Positions 3,272 through 18,200 of a stretch of DNA of 64,000 nucleotides are shown one piece after another (the stretch's first letter is position 1; every line of letters begins with the position of its first letter). The stretch lies in the sequence record KJ019142.1; one strand, given 5' to 3'. The notes under the pieces are model-generated. The model searched no databases. It was given only the letters and a program-made list of their open reading frames with translations, and was not told where the DNA came from. A program made the translations under genes and the position numbers.

Positions 3272-3988
3272 ATGGATGTATCCAATCCTGATAACTGGTA
3301 TATTGGTAGATTTTGTGAATCTAACTTCCTAGATCAAACAGCACTCTCCTCAGTGAGGTCATGGATTGATACTCAATCATGGGTAGATGGAGTTTTAACT
3401 TTGGACTACTCTAAAGATAAGGATCCATATCAACTGAAAAGAAATCAGGCAACGAGAAATATAATCCCACCCAGACTATTTTGGCCACATGTTGATAAGA
3501 ACGAAAAGTTCGCTCGGTTCACCTGTCCCCGATCAAGCACCGATCCAAACTGCACAAAAACATCTAAGGGTGAATACTACAAACCACACTTTGATGATGT
3601 AGTTAATGGGCACTTCTCAACTACGATCTTTATCAGTGATCCTGATGAATATGATGGTGGTGAGTTAGTTCTGTATATTGACGGGAAGGAAGTATTCTTC
3701 AAACCAAAAGCAGGTGAAGGTGTAACTTATGAGACTGGTATTGGTCATAGAGTCAATACAGTCACAAGGGGTGAGAGATTGGCATTTGTATTCTGGACAG
3801 ATTGTCGATGGGATGATATTGATGATTATCGTGATTGGCGTTATTATAACTATATGAAAGACTACCTAATGACAACTCCTTATGTTGATACCTTATATGA
3901 GTTTTGTAACGAACCCCATACTATATTCAAAGGGAAATCATATGATATTATGAGAAAGGTTATGAGGAAAGTTATTCCTAATGGTTGA
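3272..3988 (+). CDS. 2OG-Fe(II) oxygenase (PKHD type)
   Basis: YKPHFD...DEYDGGEL...HRVNTVTRGERL; start moved to ATG 3272 because the longer ORF overlaps tRNA-Asn. Confidence 0.88.
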   Translation: MDVSNPDNWYIGRFCESNFLDQTALSSVRSWIDTQSWVDGVLTLDYSKDKDPYQLKRNQATRNIIPPRLFWPHVDKNEKFARFTCPRSSTDPNCTKTSKGEYYKPHFDDVVNGHFSTTIFISDPDEYDGGELVLYIDGKEVFFKPKAGEGVTYETGIGHRVNTVTRGERLAFVFWTDCRWDDIDDYRDWRYYNYMKDYLMTTPYVDTLYEFCNEPHTIFKGKSYDIMRKVMRKVIPNG

Positions 3989-4514
3989 ATCATTTTACGG
4001 AGAAATACTCAACTCGGATGCTACTGGGCATCTGTATTCGTATGCCCAAAGTATTCAAGACTGGCAAACCATAAACCAAGACTACATGGGTAAGAAATAC
4101 CAGTCTGTTATGGCTCATAAAGTCCCTAGGGGAAATGAGATTGAGAAGTATGTTGTCAGAACTTTTCTCACATTCAATAAGTTATATTTCAACTACGATT
4201 TAGTAGGAACATTTGAAACACAGATTCTGAAATACAATGTGCATGATGGGTATGATTGGCACTGTGACTATGGTGTGAGTGAGAATCCCAATGCAGTTAG
4301 GAAACTGAGTATGATTATTCAACTCAGTGATATGTGGGACTACAACGGTGCAAATGTATTCCTAAGGGACTGGCACAACCGAGAACACATCCTAAGTAAG
4401 GAGTCTGGGTATGTTACCGTATTTGACTCTAGGTCCCCTCACAGGGTCTCTCCTCTAGCTATCGGAGAACGATACTCACTGGTAGCCTGGGCTCACGGTC
4501 CAGAGTGGAGATAA
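3981..4514 (+). CDS. 2OG-Fe(II) oxygenase
   Basis: YDWHCD...RKLSMIIQL...HRVSPLAIGERYSLVAW. Confidence 0.9.
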   Translation: MVESFYGEILNSDATGHLYSYAQSIQDWQTINQDYMGKKYQSVMAHKVPRGNEIEKYVVRTFLTFNKLYFNYDLVGTFETQILKYNVHDGYDWHCDYGVSENPNAVRKLSMIIQLSDMWDYNGANVFLRDWHNREHILSKESGYVTVFDSRSPHRVSPLAIGERYSLVAWAHGPEWR

Positions 4515-4539
4515 ATAAAATACAAAGAAATGGAAACAT

Positions 4540-4854
4540 ATGCTTTCTACACAATATCGTCTTCGCCTTGAGGCTATCTGCCGAAAGATTGCGAATAGTG
4601 AATCTGTGGATTTGAGTGACATGATCTGGGCAGACAAATTGGCAAAGAGCCATACTACTGCTAGAGACTGGTTACAGCAGGCAAGAAGACAATCAGCCCA
4701 TCAAATTGAAGAAGGTACCATAGATGATTTTATGAATAGGATGGGTTTAGGTGATCCCGATCCGTCCAATCATAAGAAGGGATTTGATAGTGCCGATGAT
4801 ATTAAGGACTGGTTTCAACAGGATAAGCCCAAAGACTGGAGACAAAGAGACTAA
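4540..4854 (+). CDS. conserved cyanophage hypothetical protein
   Basis: 104 aa ORF, MLSTQYRLRLE start; late-promoter-like ATAAATA upstream. Confidence 0.75.
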   Translation: MLSTQYRLRLEAICRKIANSESVDLSDMIWADKLAKSHTTARDWLQQARRQSAHQIEEGTIDDFMNRMGLGDPDPSNHKKGFDSADDIKDWFQQDKPKDWRQRD

Positions 4855-4856
4855 CT

Positions 4857-5036
4857 ATGGCTAATAAAAACGACAAAGGCAATCACCCAAGAGAAGAGGG
4901 TTGGTTCACCGAAAAGTTGAAGAGAAGACTCAGGAATGATCTCATACATCCTGAACATCTAGTTCCCATTCTTATTGAAGAGAATGAGGCACTTAGAGCA
5001 GAGATTGCAACACTAAAAGCAATGCATAAATGGTAA
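4857..5036 (+). CDS. small hypothetical protein (59 aa)
   Basis: fills gap between neighbours, read by eye. Confidence 0.5.
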   Translation: MANKNDKGNHPREEGWFTEKLKRRLRNDLIHPEHLVPILIEENEALRAEIATLKAMHKW

Positions 5037-5037
5037 A

Positions 5038-6339
5038 ATGGCAGCATTAAGTTCCACTTCCCCAGGACAACTAGGTAAGTATGTCATCCCCACAGTCCAG
5101 AAACTAAATGATGCGATGAAACGCAGAACTAGTCTTGGTAGGGGGAGTGGTAAGTCTTATACCATTAAGAATACCCCTGCGAATGTGGCAGCTATCAAGG
5201 AGTTCTCTCGTATTGGTAGCTCCCCCAAGTCACAGAAAGAAGCACTTGCTATTAGTCTGCAGACCACTGATACTAAAGTTCCTACTATTACTATCGGCAG
5301 TATTGATAAACCTAATATCAAATACAACCTTGGAGATATGTCCGAGGCTGTAGTTGGCGCTGCTATTGCTGCCAGGTTTATCTACAAGAATAGAAGTATT
5401 ACGACTTCAAATGTTTATGGTGTTCTATATGGAATGCCACCATCATCTAACTACCCAGGGAAGAAGGGAAAATATACAGAGAAGACATTCCAGTCAGTTA
5501 ATGAAAATAAGAAGGTTACAGATCAAGTTAAGGTGTATATCTCCTTAGCTGAGGTTAATATGGCTGCTGTGATGGATAGATCCAATAAGGATCTTATTCT
5601 TCCTTATGTTCGTTCTGCAGTCAGATATGCCAATAGTACTACTGTTAAGAAGTGGTCCAAACTACTTTATGAGAACAATAGATCAGACAAGATTGATGTA
5701 ATGTCTGATGGTCTGGGAGGACAAACCACAACTAAAGTGGATGTATATGTAAAAGTTAATGATGAGAAAGTAAATATTAATGTGTCACTGAAGGCTGGTG
5801 ATGTCAAACAGTTTGGTCAGGTCTCTGGTATTGAGTTTGAGAAACAAACTAAACTATGGGAAACCTCCTTTGGTTTTGGTAGTGAGATTAAGAGTCTAGA
5901 GTCAAAGTATAACCAGTTGATCTCAGATAAATCAACAGTCCCACAGGCTGTAACTATGGTGTATCAAGAGGTGGCTAACCTTTTTAATCAAGGTATTAAG
6001 AGAGGTGATGCTGGTATGATAAGGAAATTTGCCAACTCCATTAAGTATTTCGCTACACTAAATGAAGACAATGTAACCCTACTACAGGTGGGTAATGACG
6101 CAGCAAAGCTCTATTCGTTTGATGATATATACCAAGGAATAGAAAACATGCAACTGAACGCTTCTATTACTATGGGTAAGAGTGGTCTTCCAACCTTACT
6201 AATAAACGAGACTGCTAGTGGGCAACCCCTCATTCAGTATCGTGTGAAGCAGGAGTTCAAACCCGATGGGTCTCCATACATCAGAAACTATGTGGAGAAG
6301 CAAACTGTTCTAGGGAAACTTATTGGTGAAAACCTCTAG
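5038..6339 (+). CDS. hypothetical protein, putative PD-(D/E)xK nuclease fold
   Basis: 433 aa; GDMSE helix, KVDV...VSLK pattern resembling restriction-nuclease catalytic cores; adjacent to Dam. Confidence 0.5.
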   Translation: MAALSSTSPGQLGKYVIPTVQKLNDAMKRRTSLGRGSGKSYTIKNTPANVAAIKEFSRIGSSPKSQKEALAISLQTTDTKVPTITIGSIDKPNIKYNLGDMSEAVVGAAIAARFIYKNRSITTSNVYGVLYGMPPSSNYPGKKGKYTEKTFQSVNENKKVTDQVKVYISLAEVNMAAVMDRSNKDLILPYVRSAVRYANSTTVKKWSKLLYENNRSDKIDVMSDGLGGQTTTKVDVYVKVNDEKVNINVSLKAGDVKQFGQVSGIEFEKQTKLWETSFGFGSEIKSLESKYNQLISDKSTVPQAVTMVYQEVANLFNQGIKRGDAGMIRKFANSIKYFATLNEDNVTLLQVGNDAAKLYSFDDIYQGIENMQLNASITMGKSGLPTLLINETASGQPLIQYRVKQEFKPDGSPYIRNYVEKQTVLGKLIGENL

Positions 6340-6374
6340 GTGTGTTATAATACCATTGTAGAGATTTCTATTTT

Positions 6375-7274
6375 ATGAAGGAACGCAGAAAGTATCCAAC
6401 CGTATTGAGGTATCCAGGCGGTAAGTCTAGGATTATCTACTATTTGTTTAGGGAAAATATGATCCCTAAGAATGTCAAGGAATACCGTGAGGGTTTCCTA
6501 GGTGGGGGTTCTTGTGCTCTTGCGTTTTCTGTGATGTACCCAAACACCCCAGTTTGGGTCAATGATCTTTACTATAATCTGTTTATCTTCTGGACACAAC
6601 TCCAGAAGAATCCAGATCCACTTATCAATAGACTCCTAGAATTAAAGGACGAAGCCTGTGATGCATCAGGTACAGAAGAACTAGAGAAAAAGCATAGAAA
6701 ACTCTACACAGATATGCGTGATCTCATTAACACCTCTAGTGATCACCTTGATATTGCAACCTCCTTCTACATTCTAAACCGATCTAGTTTCGGTGGATTC
6801 ACTGAACAAAACAAGAATGCCTTCATCCGAGACTCATACAAGAATACTATTTTCTCTCAGAGTAAAATCCGTAAGTTGGCTAATATCTCTGAGATTATCC
6901 AACCCTGGAGAATTACCAATACACACTACAAGGAACTAATGAGAGCTCCTGGTGATGATGTATTTGTGTTCCTAGACCCTCCATATCTAATCAAGGATAT
7001 GTTGTATGGTAAGGACAAGGAGATGCACACTGGGTTCTCTCATGAAGAGTTTGTGAGTGAGTGTAAAGGTTCTACACATGACTGGATGATTACCTACAAT
7101 GAACACGAATGGTTGAGATCCCAGTTCGCTGACTATCATATGGAGTCTTTCGAGTTCCGTTATAGTCTCGCCCACAGGGAAGAGAATGGCAACAAGAAAG
7201 AAGAACTCCTCATAATGAACTATGAGATTCCTCGTGATATCCCAAACCCACTAGAGGTAGTTTTGTATGGATGA
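6375..7274 (+). CDS. dam: DNA adenine methyltransferase (Dam/D12 family), copy 1
   Basis: LRYPGGKS, YREGFLGGGS, WVND, FLDPPY motifs. Confidence 0.92.
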   Translation: MKERRKYPTVLRYPGGKSRIIYYLFRENMIPKNVKEYREGFLGGGSCALAFSVMYPNTPVWVNDLYYNLFIFWTQLQKNPDPLINRLLELKDEACDASGTEELEKKHRKLYTDMRDLINTSSDHLDIATSFYILNRSSFGGFTEQNKNAFIRDSYKNTIFSQSKIRKLANISEIIQPWRITNTHYKELMRAPGDDVFVFLDPPYLIKDMLYGKDKEMHTGFSHEEFVSECKGSTHDWMITYNEHEWLRSQFADYHMESFEFRYSLAHREENGNKKEELLIMNYEIPRDIPNPLEVVLYG

Positions 7275-7722
7275 TCTAGAGCTAGAGTATCATCTTTATC
7301 TGGATGGAAACCCTATTCAGACACTGAAGGATGACGCTAGTACAATGACTTTAGCCAAGAAGAGAGTTATCGGTCCTTACATTCGTAGAGCTGAATCTTT
7401 TATTAAAATATCAGAACCATTTAGGGAACTACTTCGTCTTGATGATGGTAAGGATAAACTTCTAGATGCAATAGGTGTTGTCTGGGCACACTACTTTGAA
7501 CATAAGATTAACAAGAAGTATATGGTTATCCCTAAGGATGCATCTCTTGATTTTATGGAATACTTTGGTACTATGGCACAGAAGGATAAGTTTCCAGATG
7601 ATAAATATATTAAGAAAGCTCAGCGTATTATTCTCTCCCACGAAAAGAGTATTGACGCTTTCATTAAGGCTTTTCATAGTATCCGTTTAGCCAACGACAA
7701 ATATCTCTCCCTGAAGAAATGA
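7267..7722 (+). CDS. hypothetical protein
   Basis: 151 aa, translationally coupled to both neighbours. Confidence 0.75.
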   Translation: MDDLELEYHLYLDGNPIQTLKDDASTMTLAKKRVIGPYIRRAESFIKISEPFRELLRLDDGKDKLLDAIGVVWAHYFEHKINKKYMVIPKDASLDFMEYFGTMAQKDKFPDDKYIKKAQRIILSHEKSIDAFIKAFHSIRLANDKYLSLKK

Positions 7723-10661
7723 TCACACCGAAGTCCCTACTATCATTCCTATCTGAAGCCGCTGATTCTGAGGCTGCACAACAGGCTAAGGAGATGGGTT
7801 TAACCTCTGCCGGTTATGGTAACTGGAGAGATAGGACGGGCAATGTTGTTGCCAAAACTGTAGATGGTCAGTTGGTAATGATTGATGCCAAGGCAGATCC
7901 TATGGCTAGACCAGAGGCGCCTGAGAAGGAAATGCCACCTGAAGAGGAGGAGGAGCCTCAGTTTGTAGAACCAGATCCAGATATGGTTGAGAAAGTAGCT
8001 AAGGGTCTTTCTGGTGGTAGATATGATATTGCATCAGCACAAAGGAAGAAAGAGTTACTGGCTTCTGCTAGACAGGTATTAATCAATAAACAGATCCAAG
8101 ACGCTCAGATGCAGGCTGACGCTGAGGCTCAGGCAGCGGCACAAAACCCACCAGAACCCACTCCAGAGGAGTTGGCACAACAACAGGCGGATATGGAACT
8201 ACAGCAACAGAATGCTGTAATGGATACCGAACTGAAGGCACAGAGTGTTGAGAACGGGAAACTGGACCTTCAGATGAAGAAGGACCAGATGAAGCAACAG
8301 AAGGAGGCAGAGAAAGAAGCCAAGGCTATGGATAAGTTAGCCAAGAAAGCAGAGGCACAGAAACAAGCAGAAGCCGACGCACAAGCTCAAGCTGAAGCGG
8401 AATCTAGTAATGTTGAGGCAGAACCAGAACCAAAAGCTCCAGCTGAGTTGGATCAATTATTATCGGATATTCGTAGTGGTGACGAGACCAAACTAGCAAA
8501 GTCTCTTCAGAAACTACAGAAGAAAGAAGGTCCTAAAAAGCCAAAACCAAAGGCACCAAAACTAGATATCGAACAGGTAAAGGCTCAAGCAGTAGAAGAC
8601 GCTAAGCCTGGTGATCAACAGACTGCATACTTTGGTCCTCCTCCTGGAAATACAGGTGAGGAGATGAATAATGTAGTTAATCTTATTGAACAAGTATCTA
8701 CAACTAATAAGGGCACAGTTCCAAAGTATGCTCAGAAGATGCTCGATAAGTTCAATGACCCTGTTGCTAAGAAGCAGTTTGGTGAGTATTTGGAGTTTAG
8801 TGCTCAGGAAGAAGCTAGAATCGAAGAGAACTGGAAGAAACTATCCAAAGTTAAAAATATTGATGATGCGAAGAGATTACTTACCGAAGGTATGGGTTTA
8901 ATTGAAGGTCCAAAGGGACTGGAGTTTAGACCAGTATCACCTGGTATGCGTGAGTTCATGTCTATGGCGAAGAGTAATACTCAGAAAGGTTATCGTGGAC
9001 TTCAGTATAGGGAAGTCGCCCACTTAGCAAACCCAGAAGTTCAGGAAAGAATTCTCAATACTGATAGACAGCAAGTTAACGCTGATACTATTATTAACCC
9101 TGATGTAACTTGGGAGATGGCTACCGAACTTTATGACTCTATGTCTGGAAAGGTGAAGGGTGTATTTAACAAACTAGGAGGTGCTGACGCTATGCGTGAG
9201 GCTTTCGATCCCAAAGTTCCTGTAGTATATCTAAAAGATAGTTCTGGTAAGGCTACTGGACTTACTAATATTGATGTTATGGCAAATACTGATCCTGAGA
9301 CATATAAAGAACAGTTTGCTAAAACAGGTGGCAGAAACCGAGGTATCTTTATCATGCAGAAGTTGATGGCTACTGGTGGTATGGATCAACTCACAGGTCT
9401 TCCTAACTTCCTAACTCCTGAGAGTGGAACTATCGATCACCTAGAGGGTAGGTCACAGAAGATGGCGGACAAGTCCATCCGTAAGGACTCTCCTATCAAT
9501 ATGGCTATTGTTTCTAACTCAGTTAACTGGGCAAAGGCAGACGCTGCTGATCCTGAAACTGGAGCAAAGGATACTATTCCTGGTTTGGTTGCTCTAGGTC
9601 AATCTTACAGTGGAGGTATTAACCCAGCTGCCAAGAAAATCATAGAACAGGGTGGTGAAGAATCCATGAAACAAGCTTGGATGACTCAGAGAATTTCGGG
9701 TATTGATATCAGAACACAGGCAGACGCCGAGAAGAAAGATACAGAACCTGATAGTCTTGATACTTTTATGGACGTACCTATGGGTAAATCCGGTGGTGTT
9801 GTTAATAGACTATCGGACGCTACTTCTTTTGGATATGATCTTCGTAATATGACTATGTATTACCCACGTGCGGATCATAAAAATAAGTATGACCAAAACT
9901 CTTGGTCTGGTAACCCCAGAAAAGGTTCAAACCGAGGTTACTATGCAGTTCTAGACGGTTGGAGAAAGTCTGTTCTATCTGGTGCCATGTATGGTCCTGA
10001 GATTAGTAATTTGGTAGATAGTCATAGGGAAGAACTTACCAACGAAGTCCTCAAAAAGAGGGGAGATGAACCAAGACTAAGATCTGAAACTGAAGTTGAT
10101 GAAGAACTCAGAAAGTTTAAGAAGAACTATGTTAAGTATCAGTACTCTATGCCTATGAGAGCCATTGCTTCTGCTTGGACAACTGGTATGATATCAAGAC
10201 AGGATTATATCAAAGAGCTAAAGAGACTTAGTGATAAGGCTCTTGGTCAATTAGGTCCTGGTGGTGAGGTACATAGAGCTAGATTGGTAAAGGAAAGGGA
10301 CGAGTCTCTTAATCAATATCTATCTGAAATTGAAACTCATCAAGGTGTTGACGAACTATCTGAGGTTGACGAGGAGTGGTTGATGGAGAATATTGGAAGC
10401 AATCCTGTTATGAATATGGCTTTATCTGAGTTTGGTAGAGGAGTTTTACGTAAGAAGTATCCAGCTGTTCTAGACGCGTTTGACGCGGGTATTGCTGACG
10501 GCAGTGTTTCTTCAGGTAACTCTTTGACTGTTGGAAATAAAAAGAACGCTAAGAAACTTGTAGATCCGTCACAAGGGAAGTTCTTTGAGCACTTTGACTT
10601 GACAAACCAAGAAAACAGTGGTATGATGGATACGTTAAAGAGGTTGAGGAAAACCCGTTAA
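7719..10661 (+). CDS. 980-aa protein: N-terminal domain shared with the cytidylyltransferase, Gln/Ala/Glu coiled coil, HNH-like motif
   Basis: long ORF; DQLTG...TIDH...DSPINMAIVSNSVNWAK at about 9380-9540 resembles a beta-beta-alpha-metal core. Confidence 0.7.
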   Translation: MITPKSLLSFLSEAADSEAAQQAKEMGLTSAGYGNWRDRTGNVVAKTVDGQLVMIDAKADPMARPEAPEKEMPPEEEEEPQFVEPDPDMVEKVAKGLSGGRYDIASAQRKKELLASARQVLINKQIQDAQMQADAEAQAAAQNPPEPTPEELAQQQADMELQQQNAVMDTELKAQSVENGKLDLQMKKDQMKQQKEAEKEAKAMDKLAKKAEAQKQAEADAQAQAEAESSNVEAEPEPKAPAELDQLLSDIRSGDETKLAKSLQKLQKKEGPKKPKPKAPKLDIEQVKAQAVEDAKPGDQQTAYFGPPPGNTGEEMNNVVNLIEQVSTTNKGTVPKYAQKMLDKFNDPVAKKQFGEYLEFSAQEEARIEENWKKLSKVKNIDDAKRLLTEGMGLIEGPKGLEFRPVSPGMREFMSMAKSNTQKGYRGLQYREVAHLANPEVQERILNTDRQQVNADTIINPDVTWEMATELYDSMSGKVKGVFNKLGGADAMREAFDPKVPVVYLKDSSGKATGLTNIDVMANTDPETYKEQFAKTGGRNRGIFIMQKLMATGGMDQLTGLPNFLTPESGTIDHLEGRSQKMADKSIRKDSPINMAIVSNSVNWAKADAADPETGAKDTIPGLVALGQSYSGGINPAAKKIIEQGGEESMKQAWMTQRISGIDIRTQADAEKKDTEPDSLDTFMDVPMGKSGGVVNRLSDATSFGYDLRNMTMYYPRADHKNKYDQNSWSGNPRKGSNRGYYAVLDGWRKSVLSGAMYGPEISNLVDSHREELTNEVLKKRGDEPRLRSETEVDEELRKFKKNYVKYQYSMPMRAIASAWTTGMISRQDYIKELKRLSDKALGQLGPGGEVHRARLVKERDESLNQYLSEIETHQGVDELSEVDEEWLMENIGSNPVMNMALSEFGRGVLRKKYPAVLDAFDAGIADGSVSSGNSLTVGNKKNAKKLVDPSQGKFFEHFDLTNQENSGMMDTLKRLRKTR

Positions 10662-11542
10662 TGGCAAAACCATTATTCAAATGGACTGGGGGTAAGGGGC
10701 GACTCCTTCAAAAGTACACAGACCTAAACTTTTTCCCCGACTCTAGTCAGTTTGATACTTTCGTTGATTTGTTCTTTGGTGGGGGTGCTGTGACTATGTG
10801 GGTTGCTGAAAAGTATCCAGATAAGAAACTTATTATTAACGATCTCAATACTGAGATGATGAATCTGTATATTCAGATTCGAGATAACTGGGAAGAATTC
10901 AGGGAACACTACCTGCGCATCAGTGGGGTGTTTATTGAAACCCCTCAGGATAAAAGGAAAGCTTTATATAATTGTTATAAGAAACGATATGCCTGGAACT
11001 ATAAGTGGTTGAGTGAAGCTGAGATAGCTGCTAACCTTTTGGTTATGTTAAAGACAAACTTTAACGGTATCTGGCAGGGATATATTATGTACGGCGGTAG
11101 ATACTCTACACCCCCTGGACATATCAATTACAAACCCACACTCTTTGATATCAATAAAGTAGAACAGTTCCGAGACGTTCTTTGTAGGTCTACAATATAT
11201 AACCGTTCTTTTGAAGACGTACCTATCCCTGAGAACTCTTGGGTATTTGCTGATCCTCCATATCGTGACACCAAGAAGATGTACTCCGACCAGTTCGACG
11301 ATGAACTGCAGAGTAAATTAGCTAACTTTTTAACTTCCAATAGCTGCTTATATGCGGAGTCTAATAAGGAAACCGGTGACGGTTTTTGGCAGGCACATTA
11401 TCCAGAAGAACACATTAAGTTTCTAGATCATAAGTATACCTGTGGTCACGGTGGTGCAGTAAACCCTGTAACTGAAGTTCTTATAAAGAACTATGGGAAT
11501 AATATCCCACAACCAACTACCCTTGATTCCTTTTTTAACTGA
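10661..11542 (+). CDS. dam: DNA adenine methyltransferase (Dam/D12 family), copy 2
   Basis: FKWTGGKG, FVDLFFGGGAV, IINDLN, FADPPY motifs. Confidence 0.92.
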   Translation: MAKPLFKWTGGKGRLLQKYTDLNFFPDSSQFDTFVDLFFGGGAVTMWVAEKYPDKKLIINDLNTEMMNLYIQIRDNWEEFREHYLRISGVFIETPQDKRKALYNCYKKRYAWNYKWLSEAEIAANLLVMLKTNFNGIWQGYIMYGGRYSTPPGHINYKPTLFDINKVEQFRDVLCRSTIYNRSFEDVPIPENSWVFADPPYRDTKKMYSDQFDDELQSKLANFLTSNSCLYAESNKETGDGFWQAHYPEEHIKFLDHKYTCGHGGAVNPVTEVLIKNYGNNIPQPTTLDSFFN

Positions 11543-11544
11543 TT

Positions 11545-12237
11545 ATGCAAAAGAAAAACCGTATCTCCCACGAAGAAGAAATCAAACTATGTCGCCAAGC
11601 ACAACTACATGATCATACATCCAAGTATGCTATGACTAAAATGGTTAACGCTAATATTGGGTTGGTTGAAAAACTTGCCAACAAACTCTACATCAAGAAT
11701 GATCAATACTCTTTTGATGACCTATACCAAGAGGGTGTATTTGGTCTTATCAGAGGAGTGAATAAGTTTGATCCTAGTGTTGGGTGTAGGTTTTCCACAT
11801 ATTCATACTACTGGATCTATAGTTATATCATGAGGTATTGTGAGAATAACCTAGGTAAGATCCGTATTCCCACTCACCTCCGTGAGAAGATGAGGAAACA
11901 GAAAGATAATAAGGTAGAGTTGGACAGACTAAAGTCCAAAGTCCCGTCAGTAGTATCATTAAATACAATAGTGGGTGAATCACTATCCTTGGATAATGTA
12001 GTTACATACACCGAGAATATCTCATTTGATGATGAGATGGAACATGTTTTGGTTGTTATGGATGAGGTTTTGGATGAAAGAGAACACCAGGTTCTCTGTA
12101 GTAGGTTTGGTATTGGTGGCGAGAAGCCACTATCCCAGAGAGAGTGTGCTAAACTACACAATGTTACCCATGGTGCTATCTATTTGATTGAGAAGAAATC
12201 AATCAAGAAAATCAAACACCATATGGGGTATAAATAA
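11545..12237 (+). CDS. sigma70-family RNA polymerase sigma factor (not gp55-type)
   Basis: region 2 DDLYQEGVFGLIRGVNKFDPSVGCRFSTYSYYWI; region 4 HTH LDEREHQVLCSRFGIGGEKPLSQRECAK. Confidence 0.9.
   Translation: MQKKNRISHEEEIKLCRQAQLHDHTSKYAMTKMVNANIGLVEKLANKLYIKNDQYSFDDLYQEGVFGLIRGVNKFDPSVGCRFSTYSYYWIYSYIMRYCENNLGKIRIPTHLREKMRKQKDNKVELDRLKSKVPSVVSLNTIVGESLSLDNVVTYTENISFDDEMEHVLVVMDEVLDEREHQVLCSRFGIGGEKPLSQRECAKLHNVTHGAIYLIEKKSIKKIKHHMGYK
12229..12236 (+). promoter_or_regulatory. T4-type late promoter TATAAATA
   Basis: exact match upstream of the cytidylyltransferase; further exact copies at 13447, 15397, 51671, 53655, 55834. Confidence 0.8.
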
Positions 12238-12253
12238 TACTATAGTAGATTCT

Positions 12254-13468
12254 ATGACGATGAGATCGTTTCTAACATTCCTAACTGAGGCTCGTTCTCG
12301 TGCATCTAAAAGAGCCAAAGAGTTGGGACTCACTGGCAACGGTCATGGTGGATGGGAAGATAGCGAAGGTAACCTAGTCGCTATGACTGTGAAGGGTGAT
12401 CTGGAGTTTGTGAAGGGAAGAGAACCCAAAGAGGAAGAAGAACCCGATGAAAAGACTTCTGCCCCTGAAGAGGAACCAACATCCAACAAAGCGCCTGGGG
12501 TAGATCCAGAAAATACAGATACCCCACAACAGGAACAACCAGCACCTGTTCCCAAAGATAAAGGTATTCTAACTGTTGCTTTCGGTAGGTTTAACCCTCC
12601 TACTATTGGGCATGAGAAGTTAATTAATACGGTAGCATCATATTCCGAGGATGGAGATTATATTATTGTTCCTTCCCGTAGTGAAGATAAGAAGAAGAAT
12701 CCTCTAGATGTTGATACAAAAGTCAGCATCATGAGGCAGATGTATCCACAACATGCCGAGAAGATTGTTAACGATCCACATAACAGAACCATCTTTGATG
12801 TTATGCGTAAGGCGCATAATGATGGTTACGCTGGTATTAGGATTGTTGGTGGTGGAGATAGAGTTAAGGAATATGAGAAGTTAGCCAACGCATATAACGG
12901 ATCTACCTATCAGTTTGATGAAATTGATATAGTAAACGCTGGTGACAGGGATCCAGATGCGGAAGGTGCGGAAGGTATGTCTGCCTCCAAGATGAGAAAG
13001 GCGGCAGCTGATAATGACTTTGCTTCTTTTAGAAAGGGAATGCCAAAGACTCTCAGTAACGACCAGATGGTTTCTATCTACACTCAGGTTCAGAAGTCTA
13101 TGGGTGTAACACCTAAGGAAGCTGTAATTGAAAACTGGAAAGTTGCTCCTAGACTGTATCCACAGGAACTGAGAGAGGCTTATATCCAAAACGAAATCTA
13201 TAATATTGGTGATACTGTCAGTCATGACACCACTGGTATGGTAGGTAAGATCGTAAGAAAGGGAACCAATCACCTCATTTGTGTAACAGAAAGTGAAGAG
13301 ATGTTTAAGACCTGGACACAGGATGTGAGTCCTGCCGACCTAAAACCACAACCAGCAATCTCTACTCCAAAGGAGAGGGAAGTTGGAACAGATTCCCTCA
13401 GATCTTTCCTTCAGAGAATCACTCCAGGGGAGAAAGAGCAATCCTTTATAAATAAACATAAGAAATAA
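12254..13468 (+). CDS. cytidylyltransferase-like nucleotidyltransferase (HIGH superfamily)
   Basis: AFGRFNPPTIGHEKL, KNPL, GGDRV, GMSASKMR motifs; start taken at ATG after the late promoter. Confidence 0.88.
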   Translation: MTMRSFLTFLTEARSRASKRAKELGLTGNGHGGWEDSEGNLVAMTVKGDLEFVKGREPKEEEEPDEKTSAPEEEPTSNKAPGVDPENTDTPQQEQPAPVPKDKGILTVAFGRFNPPTIGHEKLINTVASYSEDGDYIIVPSRSEDKKKNPLDVDTKVSIMRQMYPQHAEKIVNDPHNRTIFDVMRKAHNDGYAGIRIVGGGDRVKEYEKLANAYNGSTYQFDEIDIVNAGDRDPDAEGAEGMSASKMRKAAADNDFASFRKGMPKTLSNDQMVSIYTQVQKSMGVTPKEAVIENWKVAPRLYPQELREAYIQNEIYNIGDTVSHDTTGMVGKIVRKGTNHLICVTESEEMFKTWTQDVSPADLKPQPAISTPKEREVGTDSLRSFLQRITPGEKEQSFINKHKK

Positions 13469-13487: not shown

Positions 13488-14984
13488 ATGGATTTCAACG
13501 TAACCGAAGCTGTCGAGCTAATCGTATTGTTAGCCGAGACAGAACAGCTAACACTACAAGATGCTCTACAGGAGTTCCTATCAGAGACCGAATTGGACTC
13601 TGAAACGGCATCCCATCTAAAGGGTGCCCTCTTTGAGAAATATTCACTCAGGGAGATGGCTACTGACGCCGTAACAAACGCTATGATGAAAGTGTTTGTT
13701 AGTCGTCCAGTAGTAGAAGAGGAAGTGGAGACTCCTGATGGTAATCTCTATTTTGTAGAGGTTGAACTAGAGGAGGAAGTTCTAGAAGGTTATCTAACCC
13801 TAGAAGAAATCCAGAATATGAGAGTGGATGCTGATGTTCTATCCGTTAAGTTAGTTGATGAAGGTGTTCGTGACACTGACGCCGAGAAAGGAACAGAGGA
13901 AAGAAAGAAACGCCTTGAGAAGAAGCGTGGAATGAAGTTGGACGACCATCCTCAGTATCTGGAAACAGATATGAAGAAGCGTCAGGAGAATAACGAGAAG
14001 GCTCGTAAGGATATGGATAAAGTGAAGGGTCAGAAGAACCCCCACTTCGAAGAGTATGATATTTCTGAAGGTCGCAAAGAAGGTGAGTCTTCTAAAGATT
14101 ACGCCGATAGAATGACTAAGAAGTATTCTGGTGGTAAGTCTAAGTCCTATGATCCCATGAAGGATAAGAACTTCGACCATGACAAGGCAGAAAGAACCCG
14201 TGGTTCTATGGAAGAAGGTCTAGACGCCGTAGGTGGCGAAGACGCTGACATTAATAACGATAATAAGGTTGATAAGACTGATAAGTATCTACACAATCGT
14301 CGTAAGGCTATCGGAAAGGCGATGAAGAAGGAATCAGCTTGGGCTGAGTATCTAAATCGTAGAGGAATCTCTGAGGAAGTATTCTCTGAAGGTGACCTAA
14401 TTGATGCAGGTCGTAAGAATGAGGGAGAAAGAAGGGGAAAAAAGATTACCGGGGAGGGTGTTGATAACTCCTCCTCTGTGAAGTTGATGCCTCGTATCGC
14501 TGAAGCTGCTATTATCACTGAGAAGTCAGAGAGTAAGTCACAACAGCGTCTCTTTGGTATGGTAAGAGCAGCTCAGAAGGGTGAGAAACCCGCCTCTGGT
14601 AAGGTTGCTGAACTAGCTTCTAAGGTTGGTAAGAAAGACGTTCTAGACTTCGCTAAGACAAAACACAAGGGTTTGAAAGAGAACTGTTGTGATAAGTGTG
14701 GCACTCCTGATTGTACTTGTGATGAGAAGCCCAAGGCTAAGAAAAAGAAAGCTAAACTAGATGAAGCAGGGATGCCTATTCTAGAGTATTCTAGAAACAA
14801 CGCTGAAGGTCCTACACCTGAAATGATTGATCCTCCAAAGGATGAAGAAGGTAAGAAGGGTGTAAAGAACCCTAAAGGTAAGGCTAAGAGACCTGGTGCA
14901 GGTGACAGAAGACCTAACGACGGTGGTTCCGAACTACCATTCGATATGGGAACCGTACCTGGTGGCGGCGGTTGTGGTTGCTAA
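13488..14984 (+). CDS. late, highly charged hypothetical protein (possible head internal protein)
   Basis: 498 aa, TATAAATA at 13447; DADINNDNKVDKTDKYLHNRRKAI and SKSQQRLFGMV motifs typical of cyanomyophage late proteins. Confidence 0.75.
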   Translation: MDFNVTEAVELIVLLAETEQLTLQDALQEFLSETELDSETASHLKGALFEKYSLREMATDAVTNAMMKVFVSRPVVEEEVETPDGNLYFVEVELEEEVLEGYLTLEEIQNMRVDADVLSVKLVDEGVRDTDAEKGTEERKKRLEKKRGMKLDDHPQYLETDMKKRQENNEKARKDMDKVKGQKNPHFEEYDISEGRKEGESSKDYADRMTKKYSGGKSKSYDPMKDKNFDHDKAERTRGSMEEGLDAVGGEDADINNDNKVDKTDKYLHNRRKAIGKAMKKESAWAEYLNRRGISEEVFSEGDLIDAGRKNEGERRGKKITGEGVDNSSSVKLMPRIAEAAIITEKSESKSQQRLFGMVRAAQKGEKPASGKVAELASKVGKKDVLDFAKTKHKGLKENCCDKCGTPDCTCDEKPKAKKKKAKLDEAGMPILEYSRNNAEGPTPEMIDPPKDEEGKKGVKNPKGKAKRPGAGDRRPNDGGSELPFDMGTVPGGGGCGC

Positions 14985-15393: not shown

Positions 15394-15439
15394 CTATATA
15401 AATAAAACTACCGGATATTCACACTAAAGGAATCAACAA

Positions 15440-17219: not shown

Positions 17220-18200
17220 ATGGATTTTGTTGATTCCAAGTTCATAAGTCTAGTATCCTCTCGCTTAGAGAAGTTCAAACAGAAGAAGTCTGACCTGTAT
17301 AACTGCAGGTGTCCCATTTGTGGAGACTCTTCTAGGAACCGAACTAAAGCGAGGGGATATATTTATGCAGTGAAACAAAATACAAACTACAAATGTCACA
17401 ACTGTGGTGTGAGTATGTCATTCTCTAACTTCCTGAAGGAGATAGATCCAGTATTACATAAGCAATATGTCTTTGAGAAGTTCAAGGGAAAGAACTCTAC
17501 GCCCATCAAGAACGTTAAGTCAGTTCTGGATAAGTTTTCCTACGAACCCAAGTTCAAGAAGAAGACAAAGATTGATTTGCCCTCCGCCTTTGATGTAAAA
17601 CTATCTAAGGAGTATCTGGATAACAGAAAGATTACCTCTGGGGAGTTTTATTACACAGATAACTTCAAAGAGTTTGTGAATGTAATCAAACCAAGAACGT
17701 TTGATGACGAACGTGGGGGACCTAGAATTGTAATTCCCCTGTATGACAGGGATGGTGTATTGTTTGGGTTACAGGGAAGATCTCTTCTCCCCAGTAAGGT
17801 TAAATACATCACAATCATCCTTGATGAAGACCAACCAAAAGTGTATGGTTTGGAGAAGATAGACCCCACACAGAGGGTTTATCTAGTGGAGGGTCCTTTC
17901 GATTCCACATTCATAAATAACTCACTCGCTATGTGTGGTGCTGATGTAGTATTAGATACACTGGGACTACAAGAACTAGTATATGTGTACGATAACGAAC
18001 CTCGTAACAGGGAGATCTGCAATAGGATCAATAAAGTTATCGATCAGGGTAAGAAGGTTGTTATTTTCCCCACAAATATAGAACAAAAGGACATCAATGA
18101 TATGATCTTAGCAGGGCATGATATAATGACTGTATTGGGATCCAATGTCTACCAAGGACTAACTGCTAAAATTAAGTATAACGAATGGAAAAGATTATGA
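17220..18200 (+). CDS. gp61: T4 gp61-like DNA primase
   Basis: CPICGD...CHNC zinc finger, TOPRIM VEGPFDS and YDNEPRN. Confidence 0.96.
   Translation: MDFVDSKFISLVSSRLEKFKQKKSDLYNCRCPICGDSSRNRTKARGYIYAVKQNTNYKCHNCGVSMSFSNFLKEIDPVLHKQYVFEKFKGKNSTPIKNVKSVLDKFSYEPKFKKKTKIDLPSAFDVKLSKEYLDNRKITSGEFYYTDNFKEFVNVIKPRTFDDERGGPRIVIPLYDRDGVLFGLQGRSLLPSKVKYITIILDEDQPKVYGLEKIDPTQRVYLVEGPFDSTFINNSLAMCGADVVLDTLGLQELVYVYDNEPRNREICNRINKVIDQGKKVVIFPTNIEQKDINDMILAGHDIMTVLGSNVYQGLTAKIKYNEWKRL

Follow-up and report, generated by a model that had tools for sequence, protein, structure and literature searches.

Gene content of the locus

We analyzed a 64,000-nucleotide stretch of sequence record KJ019142.1 (hereafter the window), in which a 6.5-kb segment at positions 5,038 to 11,542 carries five open reading frames (ORFs): ORF 5038, the adenine methyltransferase gene Dam1, ORF 7267, ORF 7719, and a second adenine methyltransferase gene, Dam2. 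ORF 7719 encodes a 980-residue protein that we call the giant. The segment is 100% identical to isolates of Synechococcus phage ACG-2014f, a T4-like marine cyanophage (Kyanoviridae, Atlauavirus), in whose records these genes carry, in order, the labels hypothetical, Dam, hypothetical, hypothetical, and DNA adenine methylase. All five lie on the same strand (Table 1). The initial annotation of this segment, made from the sequence alone, had described the genes from Dam1 to Dam2 as tightly coupled, and the junctions between 6375 and 11545 do overlap or abut: the ATG of ORF 7267 lies within the end of Dam1, the following two junctions read ATGA and TAATG, and a 2-nt gap separates Dam2 from the gene for a sigma-70-family factor.

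The same annotation had noticed two divergent D12-class methylases about 3.4 kb apart, each directly downstream of a gene with a nuclease-like signature, and had proposed that they form two nuclease-methylase pairs of a restriction-modification (R-M)-like system. The description of the methylases was accurate. Both products match PF02086 (cut-off 22 bits), they share 21% identity, a gap of 3.39 kb separates their genes, and the ORF positions place each immediately after a nuclease-like gene. Both translations contain the FxGGG motif for binding of S-adenosylmethionine (SAM) and the catalytic DPPY motif, and against the stricter model TIGR00571, with a cut-off of 114.85 bits, Dam1 (101 bits) and Dam2 (109 bits) score slightly under the threshold. 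The nuclease-like and methylase features are far beyond chance, because their motifs occupy invariant columns of deep alignments. We conclude that the cluster is a composite rather than two R-M pairs, with one real couple, the giant and Dam2, and one coincidence, ORF 5038 and Dam1.

Table 1. Features of the locus and its right flank, in window coordinates.
Feature	Coordinates	Strand	Basis or remark
ORF 5038, 433-aa protein (P0001, phrog_3560), PD-(D/E)xK restriction-endonuclease-like fold	5038..6339	+	Candidate site E103, D235, S250-x-K252
Dam1, D12-class N6-adenine DNA methyltransferase	6375..7274	+	PF02086 86.1 bits, E 4e-24; TIGR00571 E 8.5e-29
ORF 7267, 151-aa protein (P0002, phrog_3417), no function assigned	7267..7722	+	Translationally coupled to the giant gene
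Giant (ORF 7719), 980-residue protein	7719..10661	+	Leader, module, linker, C-terminal region with HNH core
Giant leader, residues 1-13, ending L-S-E then A	7719..7757	+	Resembles the T4 capsid-targeting sequence; L/I-x-E prohead-protease site
Conserved module of ~35-40 residues (A..A..GL...G.G.W/Y.D..G..VA.T..G.LV)	7761..7883	+	Found in giants, cytidylyltransferases, and virion kinases; 1-3 copies
Acidic, Q/A/K-rich low-complexity linker, ~residues 60-290	7896..8588	+	First two thirds conserved among isolates
Giant C-terminal effector region, residues 291-980	8589..10661	+	Mostly helical, HNH core embedded; rare family; hypervariable among isolates
HNH (beta-beta-alpha-Me) core, D573-H574, N594, N603, K606	9426..9542	+	Invariant columns and AlphaFold2 model
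Dam2, D12-class N6-adenine DNA methyltransferase	10661..11542	+	PF02086 83.5 bits, E 2.5e-23
Sigma-70-family factor	11545..12237	+	PF04542, PF04545; conserved right flank of the variable island
Cytidylyltransferase-like protein	12260..13468	+	PF01467; same leader and module as the giant

Dam2 is linked to the giant

In the phage collection, matches to Dam2 of 59% identity or more come only from 45 ACG-2014f records, S-CREM2, and the S-N03 group, all of which bear a giant, and the next-best matches reach at most 36% identity. Every metagenomic contig and phage lineage that has sequence downstream of the giant shows a Dam2-clade methylase (59-86% identical) as the next gene or within three genes. 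The gene right after the giant is such a methylase, 61-86% identical to Dam2, in six metagenomic contigs and S-N03 (named contexts L010, L018, L019, L020, L021, and S-N03), and the giants themselves are just 25-63% identical in these contexts. The S-N03 giant homologue, of 972 aa, lies at the upper end with 63% identity to the ACG-2014f giant. S-CREM2 differs in that three genes are inserted between its giant homologue, gp12, and the Dam2-clade methylase. The giant and Dam2 thus show the co-occurrence expected of R-M partners, so this half of the proposed pairing stands: the Dam2 clade is found only with a giant, next to it or within three genes. Judged by gene order and identity, Dam2 is the dedicated partner of the giant, and the two form a real, conserved couple.

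The C-terminal region of the giant contains a divergent HNH core

The C-terminal region of the giant belongs to a family with only 26 representatives among 1.84 billion proteins. The HNH-like motif reported earlier for ORF 7719 is well founded, since 23 family sequences of only 18-63% identity all keep D573, H574, N603, and K606 and have N594 as their consensus residue. An AlphaFold2 (AF2) model of the 690-aa C-terminal piece, with a predicted local distance difference test (pLDDT) score of 81.3, is mostly helical and at the motif forms two strands (280-284 and 305-309) and a helix (310-318, numbering of the 690-aa piece), so the nuclease-like assignment survives structure prediction as a beta-beta-alpha HNH core. 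The ESM Atlas neighbors nearest to residues 500-640 are PF01844 HNH clusters (features 0.90-0.91, TM 0.42-0.56), and an hhalign comparison with a phage HNH endonuclease aligned solely this motif, in register, with weak statistics. PDB sequence and profile searches returned no match. We treat the motif region of ORF 7719 as a divergent but genuine HNH core with putative nuclease activity. That the catalytic-type residues (D-H, N, and N) stay fixed even between very distant family members argues for an active nuclease.

The giant begins with a capsid-targeting-type leader and a shared module

The first ~60 residues of the giant match the N-terminus of the cytidylyltransferase encoded at 12260 (BLASTP E 3e-13). 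The module that follows the leader was also matched in Ser/Thr kinases of S-CREM2 and S-N03 (13 copies aligned), with two copies in each of these kinases and three in the metagenomic giant P0135. The giant probably acquired its N-terminus from the cytidylyltransferase.

The capsid-targeting sequence (CTS) of T4 consists of ten residues, of which positions 4 and 7 act in targeting and positions 8 and 10 in processing, with cleavage after L/I-x-E (PMC9026906). We applied these criteria as a hydrophobic residue at positions 4 and 7, L or I at 8, and E at 10. The cytidylyltransferase leader fits the pattern exactly, and within the window only the cytidylyltransferase and the giant have a true N-terminal leader. 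The scan also returned a leader-like S-F-S-N-F-L-K-E after an internal Met of the gp61 primase gene (17415-18200), and the leader pattern alone is insufficient because of this false positive. A gp21-type prohead protease (PF03420, 114.6 bits, E 4e-34) is encoded in NC_047714, a genome that matches the window at 100% identity over the region described here. The exact T4 late-promoter-like motif TATAAATA is present at 12229-12236, 24 nt upstream of the cytidylyltransferase gene, at 13447-13454, 34 nt upstream of the gene for gp186, and at 15397-15404, before the next ORF.

A homologue of the giant was detected in virions

S-CREM2 gp12, labeled in GenBank as a CRISPR-associated endonuclease, is homologous to the C-terminal region of the giant (27% identity over ~740 residues, E 4e-61) and has the same leader and module. 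It was identified by 28 unique peptides in the mass spectrometry of CsCl-purified virions, in which the cytidylyltransferase, kinase gp14, SAM lyase gp6, gp13, and gp15 were detected as well (PMC10665884). We scanned the whole S-CREM2 genome for leaders and compared the result with the published virion list by a Fisher test. The tight leader pattern occurs in five annotated genes, and the virion list includes every one of them (p 6.5e-4); of the nine with a looser pattern it includes six (p 0.0065). The giant therefore resembles a virion-packaged protein, and from its sequence we predict that it is packaged in ACG-2014f.

Several of the other S-CREM2 proteins share this N-terminal form. The SAM lyase gp6 (L012:11504-12748), the 78-aa gp13 (6039-6275), and the kinase gp14 (3739-6006), all detected in virions, start with an M-K-x-F/L-x-x-F-L-x-E leader. 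In the window, gp186 (13488-14984, 498 aa) has several L-x-E sites within its first 35 residues and a late-promoter-like motif of its own, and the two ORFs that follow the S-CREM2 cytidylyltransferase belong to the virion proteome; gp186 may therefore be a head-internal protein too.

These results bear on two readings in which the particle plays no part. The initial annotation had supposed that the nuclease-methylase genes act inside the cell in the manner of an R-M system; the methylase-nuclease logic of that proposal is retained for the giant and Dam2, and the capsid-targeting-type leader together with the virion-detected homologue shifts the reading to a nuclease delivered by the particle. 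Alternatively, the giant might not be packaged at all and might be a free-standing selfish HNH element with a coincidental likeness to a leader. We consider this very improbable: the giant is far larger than homing HNH proteins, its 60-90 N-terminal residues are common to the cytidylyltransferase and to kinases detected in virions, and its position is fixed across lineages.

The giant C-terminus and Dam2 form a hypervariable cassette

We compared four ACG-2014f variants whose isolates are otherwise 97-100% identical. ORF 5038, Dam1, ORF 7267, and the sigma factor are 97-100% identical among the four, and residues 1-200 of the giant are 85-97% identical, whereas identity drops to 18-25% in the giant C-terminus and to 59-78% in Dam2. 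Against NC_026927 the breakpoint lies at 8388, with the variable cassette beginning at 8389, and homology returns at the Dam2 start codon. On the right, the sigma factor is 97-99% identical among the variants. All four variants retain a (D/E)-H ... N ... N core; hhalign relates the giant of variant V4 to the family with a probability of 95.9%, and that of V2 only weakly, in register. Divergence of the giant C-terminus and of Dam2 between conserved flanks resembles, by analogy, the signature of an arms race as at the internal-protein locus of T4, which conserves nothing but the CTS and encodes diverse anti-restriction factors (PMC3012670).

This variability also informs a reading in which the giant acts on the phage's own DNA, either nicking Dam2-methylated sites for recombination-dependent replication or processing genome ends after ejection, with Dam2 marking the target. 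The strict linkage of the giant and Dam2 would suit an enzyme directed by methylation no less than one blocked by it, and co-packaging would place the enzyme on its substrate. However, hypervariability among near-identical isolates is unexpected for a core replication function and the giant is absent from most cyanomyoviruses, which makes action on the phage's own genome unlikely.

Additional ORFs occupy the slot between the giant and Dam2. In the variants these are NPPY ORFs resembling Eco57I or, alternatively, a 169-aa ORF bearing D...E-L-K, and in S-CREM2 they include an ORF annotated as an EcoRI-type restriction endonuclease and a DenV glycosylase. The 169-aa ORF (L003:8361-8870, phrog_11134) and the EcoRI-like ORF (L012:8962-9531, S-CREM2 gp11, phrog_2400) were both unmatched by Pfam; such small slot ORFs may represent additional nuclease genes that accompany Dam2-clade methylases. 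The ORFs labeled DNA methyltransferase (L002:11350-12255; L004:8915-9658 and 9648-10553) begin at NPPY and match the second half of the Eco57I methylase profile only. A 137-aa ORF directly upstream of a giant (L020:1087-1500) has only a motif-I-like C-G-x-G-N-F stretch. The NPPY ORFs and the C-G-x-G-N-F ORF may be halves of a gamma-class methylase split around the giant gene. We also weighed, and rejected, the idea that every variant of the giant comes with an extra methylase of its own that matches it and confers immunity: V2 and V4 share a 301-aa NPPY ORF (99%) and Dam2 (98.6%) and have unrelated giant C-termini. The slot is mosaic rather than co-swapped, because V2 and V4 share the methylases yet not the giant C-termini.

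ORF 5038 and Dam1 are unrelated neighbors

The initial annotation had read GDMSE, KVDV, and SLK in ORF 5038 as a PD-(D/E)xK-like signature. These residues are present (positions 99-103, 233-236, and 250-252), and D100, E103, D235, S250, and K252 are invariant across 57 homologues that are 56-96% identical. An AlphaFold model built from the 57-sequence alignment has a pLDDT of 89.3, and an exhaustive comparison of it with 48,161 PDB representatives ranked HinP1I first (7.1; 201), followed by MspI (6.8; 211), ThaI (4.8; 133), and HhaI (4.5; 155), with further PD-(D/E)xK nucleases below these. Foldseek independently returned HinP1I with a probability of 0.89. HinP1I, MspI, and HhaI constitute one family of monomeric type II enzymes (PMC7026639). 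The model contains the alpha-beta-beta-beta-alpha-beta core of solved PD-(D/E)xK members, and the invariant E103, D235, and S250-x-K252 fall on a helix, a strand start, and the next strand, which are the places expected for the active site in this fold, with Ser in place of an acidic or amide residue. Pfam, NCBIfam, and PADLOC profile scans of ORF 5038 gave no match, and a BFVD search returned only uncharacterized cyanophage proteins. Structure prediction thus upheld the nuclease-like assignment here as it did for ORF 7719: the model has a nuclease fold of the HinP1I/MspI type, and activity is plausible.

Its genomic distribution is that of a gene without a fixed methylase partner. ORF 5038 has 443 length-conserved homologues in marine metagenomes and is 99-100% conserved among ACG-2014f isolates. 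In four longer contigs (L005-L008), the ORF 5038 homologue is followed by a DUF6267 gene or an ORF 7267 homologue and then by the cytidylyltransferase and a gp186 homologue, with a methylase nearby in none. Dam1, which is likewise 99-100% conserved among the isolates, has orthologues, 34-41% identical, in 421 phage records without ORF 5038, and in most of the listed rows the adjoining gene is a clamp loader. By these comparisons Dam1 is an orthologue of the common solitary cyanomyovirus Dam, and ORF 5038 is a conserved gene of the cyanomyovirus replication module that is not tied to a methylase. The claim of a pair therefore fails for ORF 5038 and Dam1, which do not co-occur as R-M partners would and are unrelated neighbors.

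The proposal of two intracellular pairs acting as phage type II-like R-M systems loses one of its halves in this way. It retains the support of two nuclease-like folds, of two methyltransferase genes each directly downstream of a nuclease-like gene, and of L019, a more distant phage that keeps the same five-gene order. Against it stand the ORF 5038 homologues of L005-L008 that lack an adjoining methylase, the strong conservation and wide occurrence of ORF 5038, which are unlike those of an R-M nuclease, the solitary Dam1 orthologues of hundreds of cyanophages, and the leader and virion-detected homologue of the giant, which point to delivery in the particle. We therefore regard two such systems as improbable.

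The remaining gene of the segment, ORF 7267, gave no lead to a family or fold in Pfam, NCBIfam, and PADLOC scans or in the ESM Atlas. It is 100% conserved among ACG-2014f isolates, and in relatives its homologues lie directly upstream of a leader-bearing gene, either the cytidylyltransferase or the giant: in L008 (9299-9739; 34% identical, E 2e-25) the homologue is located between the P0001 homologue and the cytidylyltransferase, and in L019 (46% identical) it precedes the giant. The order 5038, 7267, cytidylyltransferase, gp186 is taken as ancestral because contigs L005-L008 show these genes without a methylase. On this gene order, Dam1 was inserted after 5038 in ACG-2014f, and the giant, Dam2, and the sigma factor were inserted after 7267. 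Metagenomic contig L019 retains the whole five-gene order at 46-85% identity, and the arrangement is therefore stable in that lineage.

In L005 (9313-10290), and also in L006 and L007, the DUF6267 ORF that separates the ORF 5038 homologue from the cytidylyltransferase includes the residues V-K-W-D-G, which resemble the KxDG motif I found in capping enzymes and ATP-dependent ligases. A conserved module with a nuclease fold, a ligase-like protein, and a nucleotidyltransferase hints at action on nucleic-acid ends. Four-base palindromes were also counted in the window. By observed-to-expected ratio, GGCC (0.18), GCGC (0.38), and GTAC (0.45) are strongly avoided; GATC, at 0.75 with 255 sites, is not, which is compatible with GATC methylation. 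The pattern fits selection by host restriction at GGCC, GCGC, and GTAC, and either protection or no pressure at GATC.

Discussion

We propose that the giant is an injected nuclease with methylation-based self-immunity, a reading in which packaging in ACG-2014f, nuclease activity, and protection by methylation are all inferred and to which we give a probability of roughly 0.45. The T4-type leader would direct the giant into the prohead, where the gp21-type protease would trim it after L-S-E, and the protein would be ejected together with the DNA. Its HNH core would then cut or nick DNA of the newly infected cell before phage genes are expressed. Dam2 would methylate progeny DNA ahead of packaging, such that the co-packaged genome would be immune and the unmethylated DNA of the host or of a rival phage would be exposed.

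A number of observations weigh against this proposal. The leader of the giant fits the T4 pattern with an offset of three residues from the canonical 10-residue form, and no exact TATAAATA late-promoter motif lies upstream of the giant gene. Pfam, NCBIfam, and PADLOC models miss the HNH core of the giant, with Pfam and the others silent on all 23 family members, and whole-model fold searches with the 690-aa piece gave no global match and only helical-repeat noise. The protein detected in virions is a homologue with 27% identity from a different phage, and the authors of that study warn that abundant non-structural proteins might co-purify (PMC10665884). V2 and V4 share Dam2 (98.6% identical) but have giant C-termini that are 20% identical, so a given Dam2 allele does not correspond to a single nuclease type. 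Finally, a shared role in anti-restriction would be enough to place the giant and Dam2 side by side.

This last point leads to the main rival, an anti-defense island without R-M logic, in which the ejected giant protects incoming DNA or disables a host defense, in the manner of P1 DarB or T4 IPI*, with an HNH core that binds or processes a host target and Dam2 as a second anti-restriction methylase. The S-CREM2 giant lies within a block of virion-detected putative take-over or counter-defense proteins (SAM lyase and kinase) together with a Dam. The T4 internal proteins, as diverse anti-restriction factors that share only a CTS (PMC3012670), offer a model for such an island, the hypervariability of the giant fits an arms race with host defenses, and the combination of one Dam2 with two giant types in V2 and V4 is as this reading would have it. 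However, the D-H, N, and N residues are invariant in very divergent giants, which argues for an active nuclease, and the Dam2 clade never occurs without a giant and is the next gene in six independent contexts, a tighter association than a shared theme needs. We consider an anti-defense role without R-M logic to be rather unlikely, and a better candidate than the other alternatives discussed above.

The injected-nuclease proposal can be extended to T4-like cyanophages. These phages may carry a natural system of "injected restriction" that belongs to a broader group of ejected enzymes tagged by the leader (kinase, SAM lyase, a cytidylyltransferase resembling nicotinamide mononucleotide adenylyltransferase (NMNAT), and nuclease), with cargo domains swapped between phages as in polymorphic toxins, making the locus the cyanophage counterpart of the T4 internal-protein locus. 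We offer this generalization more tentatively than the proposal for the giant itself.

By analogy, the closest precedent for the giant and Dam2 is the chlorovirus system. Chloroviruses package restriction enzymes while leaving out the methylases encoded next to them, and they degrade the DNA of the host within five minutes (PMC7019647). As in PBCV-1, a nuclease gene lies next to a methylase gene; PBCV-1 packages the nuclease without the methylase and has methylated viral DNA (PMC7019647), as we infer would hold here. The two systems differ in that PBCV-1, a virus of eukaryotes, encodes small enzymes of type II with no known targeting leader, whereas the protein described here has 980 aa, an HNH core, and a CTS-type leader and belongs to a T4-like phage.

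The T4 proteins IPI, IPII, IPIII, and Alt provide the second comparison, with a ~10-residue leader, an L/I-x-E site, a gp21-type protease, and a hypervariable locus in which the leader is conserved (PMC3012670, PMC9026906). They are ejected with the DNA (PMC3012670, PMC9026906), as the giant presumably would be, and nucleases fused to a CTS have been packaged artificially in T4 (PMC9026906). The T4 internal proteins are small, are not nucleases, and have no dedicated methylase partner, and the cyanophage proteins add the repeated 35-residue module. True homologues of the giant C-terminus are S-CREM2 gp12 and the 972-aa protein of S-N03; both share its leader and module and are encoded near a methylase of the Dam2 clade. 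The published annotation of gp12 rests on HNH similarity to Cas9 and does not mention the leader, the Dam linkage, or the hypervariability.

In the Dar system of phage P1, DarB is a large virion-packaged protein that is ejected and acts on the entering DNA, and methylation features there as well; it contains methylase and helicase domains and protects against type I restriction. It differs from the giant in having no HNH core, and we found no sequence similarity between the two.

Virion-borne restriction and CTS-targeted ejected proteins are thus kinds already known. The literature searched contains no description of the Dam linkage, the leader rule, or the hypervariable cassette. The analysis also corrects the public-record labels "Cas9 nuclease" and "cytitidyltransferase" for these genes. 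If the proposal is true, the rare and uncharacterized HNH family of the giant, with its known methylase partner, would be a candidate source of new sequence-specific nucleases or nickases. The system would provide a bacteriophage case of a strategy described, in the literature searched, only for chloroviruses, with the restriction half delivered in the particle, and host or rival DNA would be attacked before viral gene expression. The leader and module would together give a sequence rule by which to predict the proteins that cyanophages eject into marine phototrophs of high abundance, and the cassette would mark a hypervariable locus of phage-host or phage-phage conflict in natural populations.

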